A stretch of DNA of 64,000 nucleotides, from the IMG/VR virus record IMGVR_UViG_3300041411_000080, positions 256,859 to 320,858 of that record, one strand, 5' to 3'. The notes under the pieces are model-generated. The model saw only the letters and a list, made by a program, of their open reading frames with translations, was not told where the DNA came from and made no database searches. This document shows positions 42,086 through 63,245 of the stretch, in pieces. Positions within the stretch are counted from its first letter, which is position 1; each line of letters opens with the position of its first letter. Both the position numbers and the translations under genes were made by a program.

Positions 42086-42550
42086 TTACTGCTTTTCTTC
42101 TGGTACCGCAATACCTTTTTCTTTGTCTTCCTCGGCCCAGATCTCACACATCATTACATGCTGTTCCGCCAGCTCGAGGACGTCTTTATCCAGTTGTTCT
42201 AGGTTGAGGTACGGAACTACGATGGTATCGAAATACTCATGTAGGTCCAGATTGCTCAATTCGGTGTGCAGTGCCATCAACGCTGCCAGTTCGGATTCAC
42301 TGAAGAATTCCTTACCACCGATGTTGGCACTGACGTCCAGGAAGTAATCGCGCCATGCATCAAAGGTAATACCTTCTTTGACCATATCACGAATCTTGGC
42401 AACAACCTCACTACCACGAGTCATGGCGGCGAGCATGAAATCACGCTCTTTATCGGTGCCCATCAGTTCAGCCATTTTAGAGCCGAAGATGTGACCGGAC
42501 GCAGCACAGATTTCATTAACGCGTTGAGCAGTCATGTAACTTTCCTTCAA
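42086..42550 (-). CDS. helical early protein, paralog family
   Basis: True start probably MTAQRV after AAGGA. Confidence 0.75.
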   Translation of the reverse strand: MKESYMTAQRVNEICAASGHIFGSKMAELMGTDKERDFMLAAMTRGSEVVAKIRDMVKEGITFDAWRDYFLDVSANIGGKEFFSESELAALMALHTELSNLDLHEYFDTIVVPYLNLEQLDKDVLELAEQHVMMCEIWAEEDKEKGIAVPEEKQ

Positions 42551-42555
42551 GGAGA

Positions 42556-42915
42556 TTAAATTGTGGTTTCGCCTTCGGTCATTGCTTGACCAAAGTACAT
42601 CAACATCAGGCCGCCAGCAATAGCCAGTTCGTCACGATTGCAATCACCGAATGCGTAACTGCGCACACCATTGAGATTAGTCAGCGAACGAATGGAACAC
42701 CATTCGAAAGACAGACTTTTCTTACCGACGCGCATGTCGATCTTGTACTGACCTTTCTCACGATCGATTGGAATGACTTCGATCTGACGATCGTTTTCCC
42801 AGATGTTCATGGCTGGGATATCTTTACCGCATTCAACCCAGACTTCACCCATCAGTTCGTTGATGATGGTCATGAGACCCTTTTCCATTGCATCTGTTAC
42901 CGGACATATCGACAT
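42556..42915 (-). CDS. hypothetical protein
   Basis: 119 aa in an operon. Confidence 0.7.
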   Translation of the reverse strand: MSICPVTDAMEKGLMTIINELMGEVWVECGKDIPAMNIWENDRQIEVIPIDREKGQYKIDMRVGKKSLSFEWCSIRSLTNLNGVRSYAFGDCNRDELAIAGGLMLMYFGQAMTEGETTI

Positions 42916-42917
42916 TT

Positions 42918-43352
42918 TTAAAACTCGTATTTAGCTTTGATCCATGGGAAGTATTGATCGTAGGTACGGATAGGACCGACGACCGTAATAGCTTGAATGT
43001 TCTGACGACGACTGAGACGACTTACCGCCGCAACCGTACGTTGATCACGACGAATGATCCGAGCTGGAATGGCATGATAACCACTGACTGGCCAGCTCAC
43101 GAACATGTCATTGTTTGCATCCACCTGAAAAGTGAAGAACGTGAACTTCTCAGGACTTTTAAGCTGTGCTCGACGTTTAGCCAGGAAACCAGCGATGCTA
43201 TCGACGTAAGCTTTCATTGGCTCTTCGAGAATGACCTCTGCATTGCAGTCAGTATCGACTGGCATTTGATCATCAGGGATAACCTGAACGGCCACGCCCT
43301 TACCGACCAGAGTCGTATCAAGGTGCAGACGATAATCAGGATCAAGTTGCAT
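42918..43352 (-). CDS. hypothetical protein
   Basis: 144 aa; AAGGAG SD. Confidence 0.75.
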   Translation of the reverse strand: MQLDPDYRLHLDTTLVGKGVAVQVIPDDQMPVDTDCNAEVILEEPMKAYVDSIAGFLAKRRAQLKSPEKFTFFTFQVDANNDMFVSWPVSGYHAIPARIIRRDQRTVAAVSRLSRRQNIQAITVVGPIRTYDQYFPWIKAKYEF

Positions 43353-43363
43353 GGTGCTACTCC

Positions 43364-43729
43364 TTATTTACAGAGATCGATTACACGGTCGACGTTAACG
43401 ATCTTCGCTACACGCCACAGTTTGAAGTATTCACGAATGTGCTTCTTGGTGCAGTGGATCAGACCACCAAAGTGGACATCACCTACAATCACCACATTAC
43501 AATTCTCACCGTCGCGCAATACCAGCTCCGAGAAGTTATCATCTTCATCAAAGCGCAGTTCGAATTGCGGACGAACCAACTGTTCGAATTCAAAGATGAT
43601 GTCGCCAGCGTTGGCACGTTCGACCATGTGGTTAATAATCCCTACGGCGTAGAGTGCAGCCTCATGGCTTTGCTTACCAGTGAACAGATCACGGGTAATA
43701 CGTTTGATATCGAGTTTCTTCAGTTTCAT
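43364..43729 (-). CDS. hypothetical early protein
   Basis: 121 aa; AAGGA SD; first gene after a promoter. Confidence 0.75.
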   Translation of the reverse strand: MKLKKLDIKRITRDLFTGKQSHEAALYAVGIINHMVERANAGDIIFEFEQLVRPQFELRFDEDDNFSELVLRDGENCNVVIVGDVHFGGLIHCTKKHIREYFKLWRVAKIVNVDRVIDLCK

Positions 43730-43763
43730 TACAAAAGTCCTTTAAGGGTTATGATTCACAAAA

Positions 43764-53120: not shown

Positions 53121-53207
53121 GGAGAGGTTCCCGAGCGGCTCAAAGGGACCAGACTGTAAATCTGGCGTCTATCGACTTCCAAGGTTCAAATCCTTGTCTC
53201 TCCACCA
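53121..53207 (+). tRNA. tRNA-Tyr (GTA)
   Basis: GGAGAGG/TCTCTCC acceptor, CCAGA-CT-GTA-AA-TCTGG, long variable arm, GTTCAAATC, encoded CCA. Confidence 0.96.
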
Positions 53208-53225
53208 AATACAGAGGTGTTTGAT

Positions 53226-53390
53226 ATGAAGGTTAAAATTAATCCCCGCCCATTAGTCAACCATGGTCCAGCTGATTGTCGCTGTTGCTCACGGTTGAAC
53301 TGGAAGGATCTTAAACTTGATAAGCAAATTCTCAAAGAAGCTGTAAACGATGCTGACTACGCCCTCAGCAAACGTGAACAGCGTGCATAG
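53226..53390 (+). CDS. 54 aa protein inside the tRNA cluster
   Basis: GAGGTG SD; MKVKINPRPLVNHGPADCRCCSRLNW...QRA. Confidence 0.6.
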   Translation: MKVKINPRPLVNHGPADCRCCSRLNWKDLKLDKQILKEAVNDADYALSKREQRA

Positions 53391-53474
53391 TTACATGATT
53401 CTTGCAGCGGCTGCGCCTGAGTAAATGCTGTCTTAACTTAACGTTACGGCGTTAGGAGAATCACCCAGTTACAT

Positions 53475-53550
53475 TCCATGATAGCTCAGTTGGTAGAGCC
53501 CACCGCTGTTAACGGTGTTGTCCCTGGTTCGAGTCCAGGTCATGGAGCCA
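53475..53550 (+). tRNA. tRNA-Asn (GTT)
   Basis: TCCATGA/TCATGGA acceptor, CACCG-CT-GTT-AA-CGGTG, GTTCGAGTC, CCA. Confidence 0.96.
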
Positions 53551-53554
53551 ATTT

Positions 53555-53580
53555 AAAAGAGAACTTCGGTTCTCTTTTAT
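53555..53580 (+). terminator. UUCG hairpin between tRNAs (terminator or processing signal)
   Basis: AAAAGAGAAC-TTCG-GTTCTCTTTT. Confidence 0.65.
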
Positions 53581-53590
53581 TCAGTGTTAC

Positions 53591-53666
53591 ACATGCCTAG
53601 CTCAATTGGCAGAGCAGCTGCCTCCAAAGCAGTTGGTTCCAAGTTCGATTCTTGGGGTGTGTGCCA
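53591..53666 (+). tRNA. tRNA-Trp (CCA)
   Basis: ACATGCC/GGTGTGT acceptor with two G.U pairs, GCTGC-CT-CCA-AA-GCAGT, GTTCGATTC, CCA. Confidence 0.92.
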
Positions 53667-56176: not shown

Positions 56177-56178
56177 TA

Positions 56179-56201
56179 ATACTCGTTGGTAGATAGTATG
56201 T
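56179..56201 (+). promoter_or_regulatory. ATACT-N9-ATAGTATG promoter-like element
   Basis: Same signature as the tRNA-cluster promoter. Confidence 0.6.
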
Positions 56202-56460
56202 AAGACTAACAGTCTCACTCGTCCAACTACCTGCCCCTAATCCCCTCAGACTAGGGCCACAGACTGTAGGTAGTTGTGATTAAAAGTATCCCGTGACGCT
56301 CTCTGACAAGTCGGAATAAGAGAGTATCAGGAAAGTCGAAGGCCCGCACCCCTAATAGGCTGAACATCTGACGACTCAGGTACTAGGTCCGTCCGCTCAA
56401 CGTGCAGAGCACCCTTCCCCAAGGTATCATGGGCTGAAGCGAAACAGTAAACTCGTCCTT
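56200..56460 (+). ncRNA. unknown structured ncRNA of about 260 nt
   Basis: No + strand ORF of 60 aa or more; multiple stems; bounded by a promoter signature and a UUCG terminator. Confidence 0.6.
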
Positions 56461-56490
56461 TAGACCCTACCTTCGGGTAGGGTTCTATTC
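56461..56490 (+). terminator. terminator
   Basis: ACCCTACC-UUCG-GGTAGGGT. Confidence 0.8.
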
Positions 56491-56513
56491 CGCAAAATGA
56501 GAAGATTACAAAT

Positions 56514-57850: not shown

Positions 57851-58504
57851 ATGCACTGTCCAGACTTCATCACCCATATGCATGTCAAAAGTCGCTTTAA
57901 TGACCAAGTCGATGATTGGGTTAAAACTATATCCGATGCTATTTCATTAGTGGTTAAACGTAACCTGTCGGCTACCCGTAATCAACTCATTAACATCGTC
58001 AAAGCTGATTTGAATTACCAGTTCGAATCGCAGACTATCCCACCGTCTATCTGGGTGAGTGACAAAGGTGAGCGGCATATCAATATCATCGTTACGCTGT
58101 TTGATATCGGTAAGATGAAGTTTAAGGTAATCGTACCTTCACTGCGTACACCTGAAGAGATTCAAAAGAAAGCACGCTATGACCTAGGTTGCCTGATTGG
58201 TGATCTATCGCAAGACGTTTACGAGTGCAGCTATAATGACTTCGACGTATACGTTGGATGGAAAAGCAAGACACTCAATTCCTATTGGTCAGGGATGTCT
58301 GAATCCTTTAAGGACAATCTTCGTACACCGCACAACCGTCAGCTGTTCATCGAGTATTGCAATAAACCCGGCTGGGACTGGGAAGCACTGCTTGATGGAC
58401 TTTACGAGAAAGCTCAAGGCTGGCCTACTGATTGGCTAGACTCCTACAAAACACCGGATGAACTTTCAACCTTACCCTATTACCAGTATACAGAGGCAGC
58501 ATAA
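57851..58504 (+). CDS. hypothetical protein
   Basis: 217 aa; GAGG SD; coupled to the radical SAM gene. Confidence 0.75.
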   Translation: MHCPDFITHMHVKSRFNDQVDDWVKTISDAISLVVKRNLSATRNQLINIVKADLNYQFESQTIPPSIWVSDKGERHINIIVTLFDIGKMKFKVIVPSLRTPEEIQKKARYDLGCLIGDLSQDVYECSYNDFDVYVGWKSKTLNSYWSGMSESFKDNLRTPHNRQLFIEYCNKPGWDWEALLDGLYEKAQGWPTDWLDSYKTPDELSTLPYYQYTEAA

Positions 58505-59409
58505 TGACTCAGTTGATCTTCAAAGAGCACCATTCGCAATTAGACCGATCAGTTAACTTCGAACATGTCTTTGAAGATCATAAGGGGCGATTGGAGGCAC
58601 GTTACGTACAAAGGGTAGACGATTACTTTATCGTGTATCTTTCGTCTCAGACGGGATGTAAGCAGGCTTGCCGGATGTGCTGGTTGACAGCAACTGGTCA
58701 AACCGATTCACGTGATGTGACAGTACAGGAATACTTCGAACAAGCTGAGCGTGTATTCGATCATTATATCGACATGATCCGTAATAACCGGAGTGGTAGT
58801 GCTGCTACTAAAGTACACTTTAACTTCATGGCTCGTGGTGAGCCTTTGGCAAATAAACATTTCGTTGAAAATGCTGACGAGATCTTACGGGGTCTTAAGC
58901 GTATGGCCGAACAATGGGGTCTAGAAGCTAAGTTCCTGATCTCCACAATAATGCCTAAAGAGTTTGATACATACGAACTAACGGATGTGTTCAAAGATCC
59001 AAGTGTAAGACCTGAGATCTATTACTCACTGTATTCAACCAATCCTCGCTTCCGTAAGAAATGGTTACCTAAAGCAATTGACCCCGGCATTGCTCTTACG
59101 TTACTCACTCGCTGGAACCGCTCAACGGGCAAAGTTCCAAAGATCCATTACGCTTTCATTGAAAACGAAAACGATACACTGCACGATGTGAAAGAAATCA
59201 TCGATCTGATCGATCATTACGGATTAGACGTTAACTGGAACATCGTTCGCTACAATCCTCCAACCGGGCACTGGTCACGTGAACCATCTGAGAAACAGAT
59301 TGATTATCTATACCAGTACATCCAGAAGCGCTTGCCTGAAGCACGCGTTAAACTAATCCCACGTGTCGGTACAGATGTGCAGGCTTCTTGTGGGACATTC
59401 CTTAAATAG
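58504..59409 (+). CDS. RlmN/Cfr-like radical SAM enzyme
   Basis: SSQTGCKQACRMC (CxxxCxxC), MARGEP (cf. MGMGEP), IST, SLY, NEND, YNP, DVQASCG (cf. DIDAACG). Confidence 0.85.
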   Translation: MTQLIFKEHHSQLDRSVNFEHVFEDHKGRLEARYVQRVDDYFIVYLSSQTGCKQACRMCWLTATGQTDSRDVTVQEYFEQAERVFDHYIDMIRNNRSGSAATKVHFNFMARGEPLANKHFVENADEILRGLKRMAEQWGLEAKFLISTIMPKEFDTYELTDVFKDPSVRPEIYYSLYSTNPRFRKKWLPKAIDPGIALTLLTRWNRSTGKVPKIHYAFIENENDTLHDVKEIIDLIDHYGLDVNWNIVRYNPPTGHWSREPSEKQIDYLYQYIQKRLPEARVKLIPRVGTDVQASCGTFLK

Positions 59410-59416
59410 GTGTAAC

Positions 59417-59791
59417 ATGAAACTCCCGCAATTCAAAATAGAGAAACTCGTAAACAAACCCGGTAATGAAATGTGGCGCATCGGTGGAGGCTTCCATGCT
59501 TACCGTGGCTACTTCCGTATCGACATAGGTACTGTGGGTTATCGCATTACTCGTGACTTCGATTACACTGCTGATTTTAATCGTCTGTATAACCAGCTTA
59601 CTGATGAGAACCAGAACACCGTGATGCGCCATATGGATACCCTGATGGCAGAAGCCCGTGAGAACCCAAGTATCGAAACCATAGATATTTGCCGTGGCGG
59701 TAACTGCATCGTTCGTGAACGTGTTGACTTGTGGCAGAAGATGTGGGCACGCACTCGTGAACTGCTCCGCGCCCAGAGGACTATGAAATGA
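59417..59791 (+). CDS. hypothetical protein
   Basis: Start refined to MKLPQF after AGGTG. Confidence 0.7.
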   Translation: MKLPQFKIEKLVNKPGNEMWRIGGGFHAYRGYFRIDIGTVGYRITRDFDYTADFNRLYNQLTDENQNTVMRHMDTLMAEARENPSIETIDICRGGNCIVRERVDLWQKMWARTRELLRAQRTMK

Positions 59792-60093
59792 GTGTACCTT
59801 TCGATGAGATCAAAAACGCTGTAGGGTCAGATCCTAGCTATGCATGGAGTTGGCACTGTAACTTGGCAATGTCGGCTTTAGATGCATCTAAGGGGACGAT
59901 TGACCATACCACAGCTAACGTTATCGCTGCTGGTCAAATGCGACATCTGTTCCAGTACGATATCACCGTACTGCAAGAGTATAAAGATGTAGTTGCGTCA
60001 GGTGATGCTATGGCTTTGGATGATGACGATCCAGATCAAGAGTCTACGTTGCAACTGATCCTCAATCTCTTGCGTAAGATCGCAAAAAAATAA
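59788..60093 (+). CDS. hypothetical protein
   Basis: 101 aa; YAWSWHCNLAM motif; ATGA coupling. Confidence 0.7.
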   Translation: MSVPFDEIKNAVGSDPSYAWSWHCNLAMSALDASKGTIDHTTANVIAAGQMRHLFQYDITVLQEYKDVVASGDAMALDDDDPDQESTLQLILNLLRKIAKK

Positions 60094-60094
60094 A

Positions 60095-60132
60095 GCATAA
60101 GACCCCTCCCGTTAAGGAGGGGCTTTATGCCG
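60095..60132. terminator. bidirectional terminator
   Basis: CCCCTCC-cgttaa-GGAGGGG then CTTTATGCCG. Confidence 0.85.
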
Positions 60133-62741: not shown

Positions 62742-62756
62742 ACTTGCTCCTTAAGA

Positions 62757-62790
62757 CGAAATAAAGCCCCCGCCAGATGGCAGGGGGCTT
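62757..62790 (-). terminator. terminator of the large ncRNA
   Basis: AAGCCCCC.GCCA/TGGCGGGGGCTT followed by TATTTCG on the minus strand. Confidence 0.8.
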
Positions 62791-63224
62791 GGGCTATAAT
62801 CTAACTACTACGTGCTGGCCAGCGCAACCCCCAGCGTATGCAGAGGTATCGCAGTTGTCAGTCGCTACTACTTACCACCCACAAACGCGTATGGTTTCGT
62901 AACTTCGCTATCCACAGTGAGTACCAATCAAAGGGATAACGCTTCGGTTCGACCATTGGTGATGGTCACTATGTTCTTCACAAGACAATATCCGAATATG
63001 GGTATTGCTTCACGTATACCGAAAGTTCAGTTATGCTAGGCGGAGTTCGATCAAGGCACCCAAGTTGTTGCTTATGGTGACGGGGACCCTACTTGGGGAG
63101 ATGACCCTTGAGAACTCCTTTACTGTTAGGATCACTGCCAAAGCAATGTTCCGAAAGTTGGAGCCCGCGATCTGGGGTGTTGCCAATGGAAGGCATGATG
63201 ATCACGGGAGGAGCATTCACTCCT
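62791..63224 (-). ncRNA. unknown structured ncRNA of about 440 nt
   Basis: Long gap with no minus-strand ORF; nested stems with G.U pairs that work only on the minus strand; bounded by promoter and terminator. Confidence 0.65.
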
Positions 63225-63245
63225 ATACTATTACACTGAGAGTAT
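63224..63245 (-). promoter_or_regulatory. ATACT-N9-ATAGTATA promoter-like element
   Basis: Same signature as the tRNA-cluster promoter. Confidence 0.55.

Follow-up and report, generated by a model that had tools for sequence, protein, structure and literature searches.

A phage-borne RlmN/Cfr-like radical SAM family with tyrosine at the position of the resolving cysteine

The locus and its genes

The window, the whole stretch of 64,000 nucleotides analysed here (positions 256,859 to 320,858 of IMG/VR record IMGVR_UViG_3300041411_000080), belongs to a 320.9-kb relative of Pseudomonas phage 201phi2-1, a jumbo phage, and carries a radical SAM gene within a four-gene plus strand unit. The features of the locus are as follows.

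53121..53666 (+), tRNA-Tyr(GTA), tRNA-Asn(GTT) and tRNA-Trp(CCA), the only tRNA genes of the phage, 4.8 kb upstream of the radical SAM gene and given as context only
57851..58504 (+), upstream gene (217 aa, no known domain), first gene of the unit
58504..59409 (+), radical SAM gene (301 aa), ortholog of 201phi2-1 gp434
58636..58638 (+), codon of Tyr45, at the position of RlmN Cys118 / Cfr Cys105, the resolving Cys
58657..58680 (+), CX3CX2C motif (Cys52, Cys56, Cys59) for the radical SAM [4Fe-4S] cluster
58825..58845 (+), FMARGEP, the family's version of the RlmN MMGMGEP (GGE-type SAM-binding) motif
59020..59037 (+), YYSLYS strand (Tyr173, Tyr174, Ser175, Tyr177), replacing RlmN AISLHA
59362..59400 (+), C-terminal loop RVGTDVQASCGTF with Cys296 (59389-59391), the equivalent of the methyl-carrier Cys355 of RlmN / Cys338 of Cfr
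59417..60093 (+), two downstream genes of the same unit (124 aa, homolog of 201phi2-1 gp430 / Phabio_441; 101 aa), both without known domains
60102..60123 (strand not assigned), G+C-rich hairpin with T runs on both sides between the convergent plus and minus gene blocks, a likely terminator ending the unit

The radical SAM ORF translates without stops, an AGAGG ribosome-binding site lies 8 nt upstream, and its start overlaps the stop of the upstream gene as TAATG, by which the two genes are translationally coupled. The upstream gene is partly similar to 201phi2-1 gp435 and is not conserved outside the clade; the small flanking genes are conserved only within the 201phi2-1-like clade.

The preliminary description placed the gene about 5 kb from the tRNA cluster and between two large ncRNAs. 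The ncRNAs could not be confirmed as such, as no Rfam family matches there at E<=1 and Rfam detected nothing but tRNAs near the gene. Yet the two flanking intergenic gaps, 56177-56513 and 62742-63245, fold better than shuffled sequences (z -2.7 and -3.0), and the second is conserved at the DNA level in 201phi2-1.

Sequence and predicted fold of the radical SAM protein

The preliminary description had noted an RlmN-like enzyme that keeps the methyl-carrier Cys, has Tyr in place of the resolving Cys and MARGEP in place of MGMGEP, and lacks the N-terminal helical domain, and our analysis confirms this observation. The stretch IVYLSSQTGCKQACRMC aligns without gaps, through the following SSQxGC motif, to RlmN LCVSSQVGCALECKFC, in HMMER alignments to PDB chains 4pl1/3rf9 (RlmN), 6fz6 and 9p0p (Cfr) as well as in three MAFFT alignments. 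In these alignments Tyr45 corresponds to RlmN Cys118, Cys52/56/59 to Cys125/129/132, and Cys296 to Cys355, its loop aligning with RlmN GDDIDAACGQL. Another Cys at the 118 site, which had been named beforehand as refuting the observation, is excluded, since the protein has exactly four Cys and no other Cys column is conserved in the family. The match to the RlmN model starts at model position 74-79 of 355 and no RlmN_N domain (PF21016) was detected in Pfam, indicating that the N-terminal helical domain is missing, and the protein ends 5 residues after Cys296.

The protein is 78% identical to gp434 and matches PHROG 27142 ('Fe-S-cluster redox domain-containing', function unknown) over its full length (E 8.9e-160, residues 1-301 on profile positions 1-300). 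RlmN and Cfr are the only significant PDB sequence matches, yet the scores are far below the curated cutoffs, 56.1 bits against 290 for RlmN (TIGR00048) and 42.3 against 530 for CfrAB (NF000424). The AF2 model has a pLDDT of 92, and the top 11 Foldseek matches are all RlmN-type or Cfr (E 3e-16 to 6e-10, TMq up to 0.79), whereas every other radical SAM family scores 7e-8 or weaker. Glycyl-radical enzyme activases (PFL-AE / NrdG) are not the closest family: PFL-AE ranks 17th to 20th (E about 5e-7 to 1e-6), far behind RlmN, with no family-model hit. The Cys296 loop has low pLDDT in the model; the equivalent loop of RlmN is described as remaining flexible (PMC9692996). A search with the PADLOC models of anti-phage defence proteins gave no hit for the protein; only the neighbouring gene of bacterial members matches AbiEii.

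A tyrosine at the resolving position is a family trait

Tyr45 is present in 265 of 266 homologs and Cys296 in 264 of 266, and 54 members have only four Cys. Cys52/56/59 are found in 266/266 members, Met109 in 264/266 and Gly297 in 265/266. The tyrosine co-occurs with other family-specific changes: Ala110-Arg111, replacing Gly-Met in the GGE motif (Arg111 in 260/266), Tyr173 (253/266), Tyr174 (263/266), Tyr177 (265/266) and His215. The Tyr type forms a clade with 99% SH-aLRT support on a long stem, about 75% viral, of at least several hundred sequence clusters, and its members are found in phages, plasmids, Planctomycetota, Myxococcota, Actinomycetota and CPR bacteria. Roughly 2000 contigs carry the gene, and cultured carriers include 201phi2-1, Psa21, Phabio (Phabio_444) and CcrColossus.

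All six residues named as the Cfr/RlmN 5'-deoxyadenosine pocket (PMC12887959) are conserved or conservatively replaced. In contrast, all RlmN/Cfr residues within 5 A of the target adenine are replaced, by V35, R37, Y41, I43, Y45, V104, H105, N107, R287 and V288, which are strongly conserved within the family. Of the residues lining the adenine in RlmN (I109, E111, R114, T116, T171, N172, V174, K345-R347; PMC12887959), replaced by V35, R37, Y41, I43, V104, H105, N107, P286, R287 and V288, most of the replacements are >=90% conserved within the family.

Compared with E. coli RlmN (PDB 3RFA, 5HR7), the class A radical SAM methylase forming m2A2503 of 23S rRNA and m2A37 of tRNA, the protein shares the predicted fold (Foldseek E about 3e-15, TMq 0.73-0.76), the CX3CX2C motif, the Met176 equivalent, the 5'-dA pocket, the C-terminal GxDxxAxCG loop, the beta-extension with the SxxDxS/T motif and the equivalents of Glu105, Arg242, Asn286-Asp287 and Asn312. 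It is about 20% identical to RlmN, has no N-terminal domain and no C-terminal tail, Cys118 and His235 are Tyr, the GGE motif reads M-A-R-G-E, and every adenine-pocket residue differs. Cfr of S. aureus (PDB 9P0P), the m8A2503 methylase, is the best PDB sequence match (E 1.4e-8) and has the same core and the same two-step methyl carrier architecture at the C-terminus, yet Cfr Cys105 is Tyr here and the Cfr specificity residues (Y97, W101, S103, S151, Q329, F330; PMC12887959) are not shared. The best structural match is 6FZ6, an RlmN-type radical SAM methyltransferase of Sphaerobacter thermophilus (E 2.7e-16, TMq 0.79), which keeps Cys at the 118 position in the HMMER alignment (TVCVSCQVGC) and is longer at the N-terminus.

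A sister short RlmN-like family of large phages, also uncharacterised (118 proteins, e.g., Tunturiibacter phage Tunturi_5 gp170), is of the Cys type. It too lacks the RlmN N-terminal domain, shares His215, Trp187, Ser295 and Phe299 with the Tyr type and lies in similar replication/repair neighbourhoods. It keeps both Cys (102/108 at the resolving and 106/108 at the methyl-carrier position), the G-x-G of the GGE motif and, as does RlmN, His at position 177; it is 26-28% identical and falls outside the Tyr-type clade. The N-terminal extensions of some members (P0259, P0242 and others) have no Pfam or PDB match. Full-text literature searches found no paper that characterises the Tyr-type family.

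Genomic neighbourhoods

In 28 representative viral loci the immediate neighbours are mainly DNA replication, repair and dNMP-metabolism genes: SbcD-SbcC, NAD-dependent ligase, ATP-dependent ligase, DnaB and DnaG-PolA, D5 primase, gp32-UvsX/UvsY, DnaQ-type exonuclease, DHH and Nmad5, with dCMP deaminase in 4 lineages and ThyX 1.1 kb away in one locus (L164). In a PHROG census of the 56 flanking genes, every named family shown but one is DNA or nucleotide metabolism, and none of the named immediate neighbours is a translation gene. No conserved protein partner was found in phages, as no neighbour cluster spans more than 4 of 27 lineages.

In the clade of this phage, in contrast, the immediate neighbours are tRNA genes and RtcB. 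In D6, Psa21-like and related IMG/VR contigs the gene starts 400-1500 nt after a tRNA array and RtcB follows within 1-2 kb. In another viral locus (L136) a tRNA gene starts 4 nt after its stop, and in L136 and two further loci (L130 and L145) the gene lies inside tRNA arrays. However, tRNAs lie within 10 kb in only 24 of 62 viral loci, 12 of which belong to one clade, and 201phi2-1 shows none within 8 kb of the gene. CcrColossus has a CCA-adding enzyme 1.7 kb downstream and PTH2 lies near the gene in the LigA lineages.

In bacteria the gene is rare and lies in sporadic islands, beside an AbiEii-type nucleotidyltransferase, a family whose studied members act on tRNA, in a cassette with divergent AbiEii-LRR-sulfotransferase genes; an alphaproteobacterial copy lies between miaB-ybeY and FtsJ/RsmB genes. 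All 5 bacterial carriers tested have a canonical RlmN above cutoff, and thus functional replacement of RlmN is rejected.

Discussion

The preliminary description offered three readings, a different chemistry or substrate, a different resolving residue, or a protein that crosslinks to RNA, and was partly supported: the first two are supported by our data, whereas the third is disfavoured. The link to tRNA and ncRNA that it pointed to holds only for the 201phi2-1-like clade. As a simple loss of function at the site would let the residue drift, the fixed Tyr argues against a mere loss and favours Tyr as the new resolving residue, or altered chemistry.

What the comparisons establish is a single-domain radical SAM protein of a distinct, mainly phage-borne sister family of RlmN/Cfr that keeps the cluster motif, the SAM / 5'-deoxyadenosine pocket and the C-terminal Cys loop of the class A methylases, has lost the N-terminal RNA-binding domain, has an entirely different base pocket conserved within the family, and carries a nearly invariant Tyr where the resolving Cys sits. 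The catalytic activity, the mechanism and the substrate are inferred, with no biochemical data for any member, and the proximity of Tyr45, Cys296, Arg111 and SAM is inferred from homology to RlmN. The enzyme probably does related radical chemistry on a different nucleic-acid or nucleotide target.

We tentatively propose that one SAM would methylate Cys296, a second SAM would be cleaved and its 5'-deoxyadenosyl radical would abstract H from S-methyl-Cys296, and the thiomethylene radical would add to an sp2 carbon of a nucleobase. Tyr45 would then do the job of Cys118, as a tyrosinate base, possibly helped by the co-substituted Arg111, Asn107 or His105, and/or as a proton-coupled radical sink for the Cys296 thiyl radical, releasing the methylated base without a disulfide. 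As a phenol is a poorer base than a thiolate and is about 4 A longer, the geometry must differ from that of RlmN. The inferred substrate is not A2503 or A37; the neighbourhoods in most viral lineages point to a DNA base or a deoxynucleoside monophosphate in the replication and nucleotide-metabolism module, that is, a C-methyl DNA modification, and DNA or deoxynucleotide is slightly favoured over RNA. Replication modules of large phages also carry unrelated auxiliary genes and hence adjacency is only suggestive, and to our knowledge no C-methyladenine or similar DNA modification has been reported in 201phi2-1-like phages. In its furthest-reaching form, which is doubtful, the family would make a previously unknown C-methylated (or otherwise radical-modified) base in phage DNA or in the deoxynucleotide pool, using a Cys-Tyr pair instead of the Cys-Cys pair of RlmN/Cfr; this would be a new branch of radical SAM methylase chemistry and a new kind of phage DNA modification spread through jumbo phages, megaplasmids and rare bacterial islands.

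Class A methylases are defined by 'two conserved cysteine residues' (PMC9692996), and mutating the second kills turnover. That a large family, mostly in large phages, has fixed a tyrosine at this site while keeping the rest of the methyl-carrier machinery points to a different way of resolving the covalent adduct, or to new chemistry, and, in phage biology, to an unknown nucleic-acid or nucleotide modification encoded next to replication, repair, dNMP-metabolism or tRNA genes. Current labels such as 'RlmN', 'rRNA methyltransferase' or 'Fe-S redox domain' in phage records are unsupported.

A less likely possibility, although a live alternative for this phage clade, is that the same Tyr-resolved methyl transfer acts on RNA, on a purine in a phage or host tRNA, for example in the anticodon loop, or in rRNA, where it might protect or tune translation during infection, possibly alongside RtcB-type repair of cleaved tRNA. 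The only characterised relatives, RlmN and Cfr, act on tRNA A37 and 23S A2503 (PMC9692996), and the tRNA arrays, RtcB, the CCA-adding enzyme, PTH2, the AbiEii neighbours and the alphaproteobacterial context favour RNA. In contrast, the changes to all adenine-pocket residues, the minority of viral loci with nearby tRNAs, the lack of translation genes among the named immediate neighbours and the presence of only three tRNAs in the phage speak against it.

It is unlikely, yet conceivable, that the fold and the Cys loop are kept but the chemistry is no longer methylation. The 5'-deoxyadenosyl radical would attack the substrate directly and Cys296 with Tyr45 (and Tyr173/174/177) would form a hydrogen-atom relay, as Cys141 and Tyr99/Tyr97 do in spore photoproduct lyase, a radical SAM DNA repair enzyme, making this a radical repair or rearrangement enzyme acting on damaged DNA or RNA. 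Five family-specific, nearly invariant tyrosines (45, 173, 174, 177, 250) accompany a single non-cluster Cys, and the recurrence of three non-homologous ligases (NAD-dependent, ATP-dependent, RtcB), SbcCD, exonucleases and UvsX/UvsY as neighbours fits a repair role. However, the loop that places Cys next to the SAM methyl / 5'-dA in RlmN/Cfr is conserved almost residue for residue (D291, A294, C296, G297), as is Met109, which is what methyl carriage needs, and the Cys-type sister family, with both Cys, occupies similar genomic contexts. The similarity to spore photoproduct lyase is only a mechanistic analogy: that enzyme is absent from the 50 best fold matches listed, its Cys sits in a different element and it uses SAM catalytically.

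A suicide crosslinker, lacking the resolving Cys and stalled as a covalent protein-nucleic acid adduct like RlmN C118A and so inactivating a host RNA or acting as a toxin in bacterial islands, is very unlikely. In its favour, RlmN C118 and Cfr C105 mutants trap the covalent adduct (PMC9692996), the protein has no other Cys and bacterial copies lie next to an AbiEii toxin-type gene. Against it, loss of function would not fix one residue across such diverse carriers, the change is part of a co-ordinated remodelling of the active site, the gene sits on bacterial chromosomes that keep a normal RlmN, and a stoichiometric weapon against abundant tRNA or rRNA would need very high expression.

A role as an alternative thymidylate synthase, suggested by the adjacent dCMP deaminases, is rejected, as 4 of 5 carrier phage records, including both complete ones, encode ThyX. 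A housekeeping role in Planctomycetota is likewise rejected, as the gene was found in 1 of 151 genomes sampled, the query genome itself. No useful RNA run was found among the sequencing runs, whereas the phage is present in rhizosphere, plant and soil DNA metagenomes.

The radical SAM gene and its alignment to RlmN

The gene lies in the last 64 kb of a 320,858-bp phage genome with direct terminal repeats, which is related to Pseudomonas phage 201phi2-1, and near-identical DNA occurs in rhizosphere, plant and soil metagenomes. The gene and the hairpin that ends its unit are:

58504-59409 (+), intact open reading frame of 301 aa, radical SAM gene
60102-60123, hairpin at which the four-gene + strand unit ends

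The radical SAM gene is the second gene of this unit. It has an AGAGG ribosome-binding site and its ATG overlaps the stop of the upstream 217-aa gene as TAATG. None of the flanking proteins has a Pfam domain. The ortholog in 201phi2-1 is gp434, at 78% identity, annotated 'Fe-S-cluster redox domain-containing', whereas other phage records call it 'RlmN' or 'RNA methyltransferase'.

A Pfam search of the protein gave only a sub-threshold Radical_SAM match, and the best NCBIfam models were RlmN (56 bits against a cutoff of 290) and Cfr (42 bits against a cutoff of 530). In contrast, PHROG 27142 matches end to end (E 9e-160). Against PDB sequences the only significant hits were Cfr (9p0p, 1.4e-8) and RlmN (6fz6, 4pl1, 3rf9). 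The residues correspond as follows in those HMMER alignments and in three independent MAFFT alignments.

Residues of the phage protein and their RlmN equivalents
YLSSQTGC-x3-C-x2-C: CVSSQVGC-x3-C-x2-C (no gaps)
Tyr45: Cys118
Cys52/56/59: Cys125/129/132
FMARGEP: MMGMGEP
Cys296 (RVGTDVQASCGTF): Cys355

As the alignment begins near RlmN residue 80-88, the N-terminal helical domain is missing, and the protein stops five residues after Cys296. The preliminary description had reported an RlmN-like enzyme that keeps the methyl-carrier Cys, lacks the resolving Cys and the N-terminal domain, and carries an altered MGMGEP motif, and every element of this observation is correct. Another Cys at the 118 site, named there as a finding that would overturn it, was looked for and is absent, since the protein contains exactly four Cys.

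An AlphaFold2 model built on 35 homologs is confident (pLDDT 92, pTM 0.90), with low confidence only in the C-terminal Cys loop; the equivalent loop of RlmN is stated to remain flexible even with SAM bound (PMC9692996). A Foldseek search with the predicted fold ranked eleven RlmN-type or Cfr chains first (E 3e-16 to 6e-10, TMq up to 0.79), whereas every other radical SAM family scored 7e-8 or weaker.

Tyr45 is fixed in a large family

A word-indexed search found 2089 proteins with E <= 0.001, and an exhaustive search of 50%-identity representatives found 973 clusters at E <= 0.001, 318 of them below 1e-30. In an alignment of 266 members Tyr45 is present in 265, the exception (protein P0217) having Cys, while Cys296 is present in 264 and the cluster Cys in all 266. 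Fifty-four members have only these four Cys. All 80 bacterial and 62 motif-identified viral loci retrieved subsequently also read Y-[LIV]-S-x at this place.

A second, separate family of short RlmN-like proteins of large phages, also lacking the N-terminal domain and also uncharacterised, keeps both catalytic Cys. This is the type of Tunturi_5 gp170 (locus L085, 5977-6975), with 118 proteins (P0270-P0383 among our sequences), of which 102/108 have Cys at position 45 and 106/108 at position 296. It also keeps the G-x-G of the SAM-binding motif and His at position 177, as RlmN does, and lies near SbcD, exonuclease, DnaB or DNA methyltransferase genes. Thus, the N-terminal domain is missing from both short families, while Tyr45 is specific to the Tyr type, which differs by a coordinated set of changes: Tyr45, Ala110-Arg111, Tyr173, Tyr174, Tyr177, Arg33, Arg37, Asn107, Arg287 and Val288. 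In a maximum-likelihood tree the Tyr type is one clade (SH-aLRT 99) on a long stem, and RlmN, the Tunturi type, an archaeal relative with Cys (locus L084) and the type of Klebsiella phage 05F01 fall outside it. The 05F01 protein (gene_104; locus L086, 5863-6792), a more distant short relative, has Val at the 118-equivalent position but a Cys three residues later (LVLSCSHGC), and its gene lies between an ADP-ribosylation gene and the anaerobic ribonucleotide reductase.

The 5'-deoxyadenosine pocket is kept and the base pocket is replaced

We compared the active site using the residue lists of the 2026 Cfr structure paper (PMC12887959). The pocket for 5'-deoxyadenosine, which in Cfr is F118, C119, M155, I290, C338 and G339, is conserved in this family as M/F58, C59, M109, V/I248, C296 and G297. 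In contrast, all residues within 5 A of the target adenine are replaced, and most of the replacements are at least 90% conserved within the family.

Residues within 5 A of the target adenine in RlmN and their replacements in the Tyr-type family
I109: V35
E111: R37
R114: Y41
T116: I43
C118: Y45
T171: V104
N172: H105
V174: N107
K345: P286
T346: R287
R347: V288

Class A is defined by two conserved cysteines; Cys118 is described as the base that deprotonates the adduct, pointing straight at C2 of the adenine, and the Cys355 thiyl radical must then be reduced, possibly through a transient Cys118-Cys355 species (PMC9692996).

Distribution of the family

ESM Atlas clusters of the family are about 75% viral. 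The named phages with the Tyr type are the 201phi2-1-like and Psa21/Phabio/D6/RVTF4 Pseudomonas jumbo phages, Caulobacter phages CcrColossus and CcrPW, and eight Brevundimonas phages. As a search of the phage records found no Tyr-type copy in any other named phage, the gene is not universal among the relatives of 201phi2-1.

A pattern scan of one genome per species of 185,579 prokaryote species confirmed 81 loci, which fall in Planctomycetota, Myxococcota, Pseudomonas megaplasmids of about 1 Mb, a Paracoccus plasmid, scattered Alphaproteobacteria and Actinomycetota, and CPR contigs. Among 151 sampled Planctomycetota only the genome used as query has it, and five of five carriers also have a canonical RlmN. 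In three unrelated bacteria (Kofleriaceae, Acetobacter, Nocardia) tmRNA genes lie within 8 kb of the radical SAM gene (L007 11499-11854, L057 958-1388, L060 12243-12610, in locus coordinates), and tRNA-Ser genes lie near the CPR copies, suggesting islands integrated at ssrA or tRNA genes; that the tmRNA gene is a classic island integration site is our inference. Phage copies group in the tree with copies from host-related bacteria or plasmids. The gene is thus an accessory, mobile one, additional to RlmN.

Genomic context

In about 40 Planctomycetota and Myxococcota loci (within L004-L059; e.g. L041 4123-7837, L007 2759-7836) the gene is divergently adjacent to a conserved AbiEii-type nucleotidyltransferase and a leucine-rich-repeat protein of about 550 aa. 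A sulfotransferase is also present in about 23 of these loci, sometimes with a sulfatase, and in one locus (L029) the order is rearranged but the genes are still linked. These loci form one clade of the tree, and only the AbiEii gene of this uncharacterised accessory cassette has a PADLOC match. None of these genes occurs in the phage loci of the Tyr type. However, in a 240-kb phage contig (L180, 5644-8363) a Cys-type short RlmN-like gene is flanked by a CTP_transf_like nucleotidyltransferase, an ANT-domain gene and an overlapping sulfotransferase, which echoes the nucleotidyltransferase and sulfotransferase company of the bacterial Tyr-type genes. Elsewhere, an abundant alphaproteobacterial chromosome (L094, 3175-17523) carries the gene between the miaB-phoH-ybeY-corC-lnt operon and IMPDH, FtsJ and RsmB genes, preceded by an HTH_3 regulator.

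In 80 IMG/VR loci (27 lineages at 60% identity) no neighbour is shared by more than four lineages, and yet the functions recur.

Recurrent neighbours of the gene in IMG/VR loci
SbcD-SbcC, directly upstream
NAD-dependent DNA ligase, directly upstream
ATP-dependent DNA ligase, directly upstream
DnaB upstream with DnaG-PolA downstream
D5-type primase, downstream
gp32-UvsX upstream with UvsY downstream
a DnaQ-type exonuclease, a DHH phosphoesterase, Nmad5 and a kinase-like P-loop protein
dCMP deaminase in four lineages, confirmed as deoxycytidylate deaminase by PDB matches, with ThyX 1.1 kb away in one locus (L164)

In a census of the 56 immediate neighbours of 28 representative loci, every named PHROG family shown except one tail chaperone belongs to DNA replication, repair or nucleotide metabolism. 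A fold search seeded from the nearest ESM Atlas cluster listed a 491-aa Bacillota cluster carrying a dCMP/cytidine deaminase domain, with TM 0.85 over the radical SAM part, which may be a fusion of this fold with a deaminase.

Against the recurrent DNA and nucleotide functions of these neighbours, in the clade of the present phage the gene follows a tRNA array and precedes RtcB by 1-2 kb; in the D6, RVTF4 and Psa21-like relatives RtcB lies 1-2 kb downstream of the gene. In the present phage the three tRNAs are 4.8 kb upstream, whereas an RtcB ligase and a LigA-like NAD-dependent ligase are encoded outside the window at G000:C1:35525-36679 (-) and about 42268-43743 (-) of the phage genome, about 41-48 kb from the gene across the genome ends, RtcB being about 41 kb away. 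In three viral loci (L136, L130 and L145) the gene sits inside tRNA arrays, and CcrColossus has a CCA-adding enzyme nearby. The context therefore points to nucleic acid or nucleotide, with DNA and dNMP metabolism the commoner setting, although it does not settle the substrate.

Interpretation

The alignments, the family-wide conservation, the tree and the gene neighbourhoods are results of the analysis, whereas catalysis, substrate and the role of Tyr45 are inferred from them. The feature is real. It lacks two defining features of class A methylases, the second Cys and a score above the curated model cutoffs, and shares the radical SAM cluster motif, the closest fold and the C-terminal methyl-carrier Cys, so we regard it as a variant within the RlmN/Cfr group that differs from RlmN itself. 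No paper that characterises the family was found in our literature searches. We infer that the SAM-cleavage and methyl-carrier half of the mechanism is retained, that the substrate is different, and that Tyr45, on the same strand position and so with the same side-chain direction, takes over proton abstraction and/or acts as the radical sink. The interpretation offered in the preliminary description, namely different chemistry or substrate, a different resolving residue, or a protein that crosslinks to rRNA/tRNA, is partly supported.

We tentatively favor a Tyr-resolved methyl transfer to a base in DNA or a deoxynucleotide. Five invariant arginines in or near the pocket (33, 37, 111, 249, 287) and the loss of the N-terminal domain, which we take to bind RNA in RlmN and Cfr, would suit a nucleotide phosphate or a DNA backbone, although this too is inference. 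The same chemistry on tRNA or rRNA is only slightly less likely, and a non-methylating Cys/Tyr radical relay of a repair type is unlikely; together these readings do not exhaust the possibilities. A suicide crosslinker is very unlikely, the main argument against a simple loss that yields a crosslinking protein being that Tyr is invariant, rather than the site drifting.

The preliminary description also placed the gene between two large ncRNAs and about 5 kb from the tRNA cluster. Two long intergenic gaps flank the gene block:

56177-56513 (+), intergenic gap, folding as RNA better than shuffles (z -2.68)
62742-63245 (-), intergenic gap, folding as RNA better than shuffles (z -3.0)

Neither has an Rfam match, and they may be the large ncRNAs of that description. 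The second gap is 72% conserved at DNA level with the gp425/gp424 gap of 201phi2-1, although most neighbouring coding DNA does not align.
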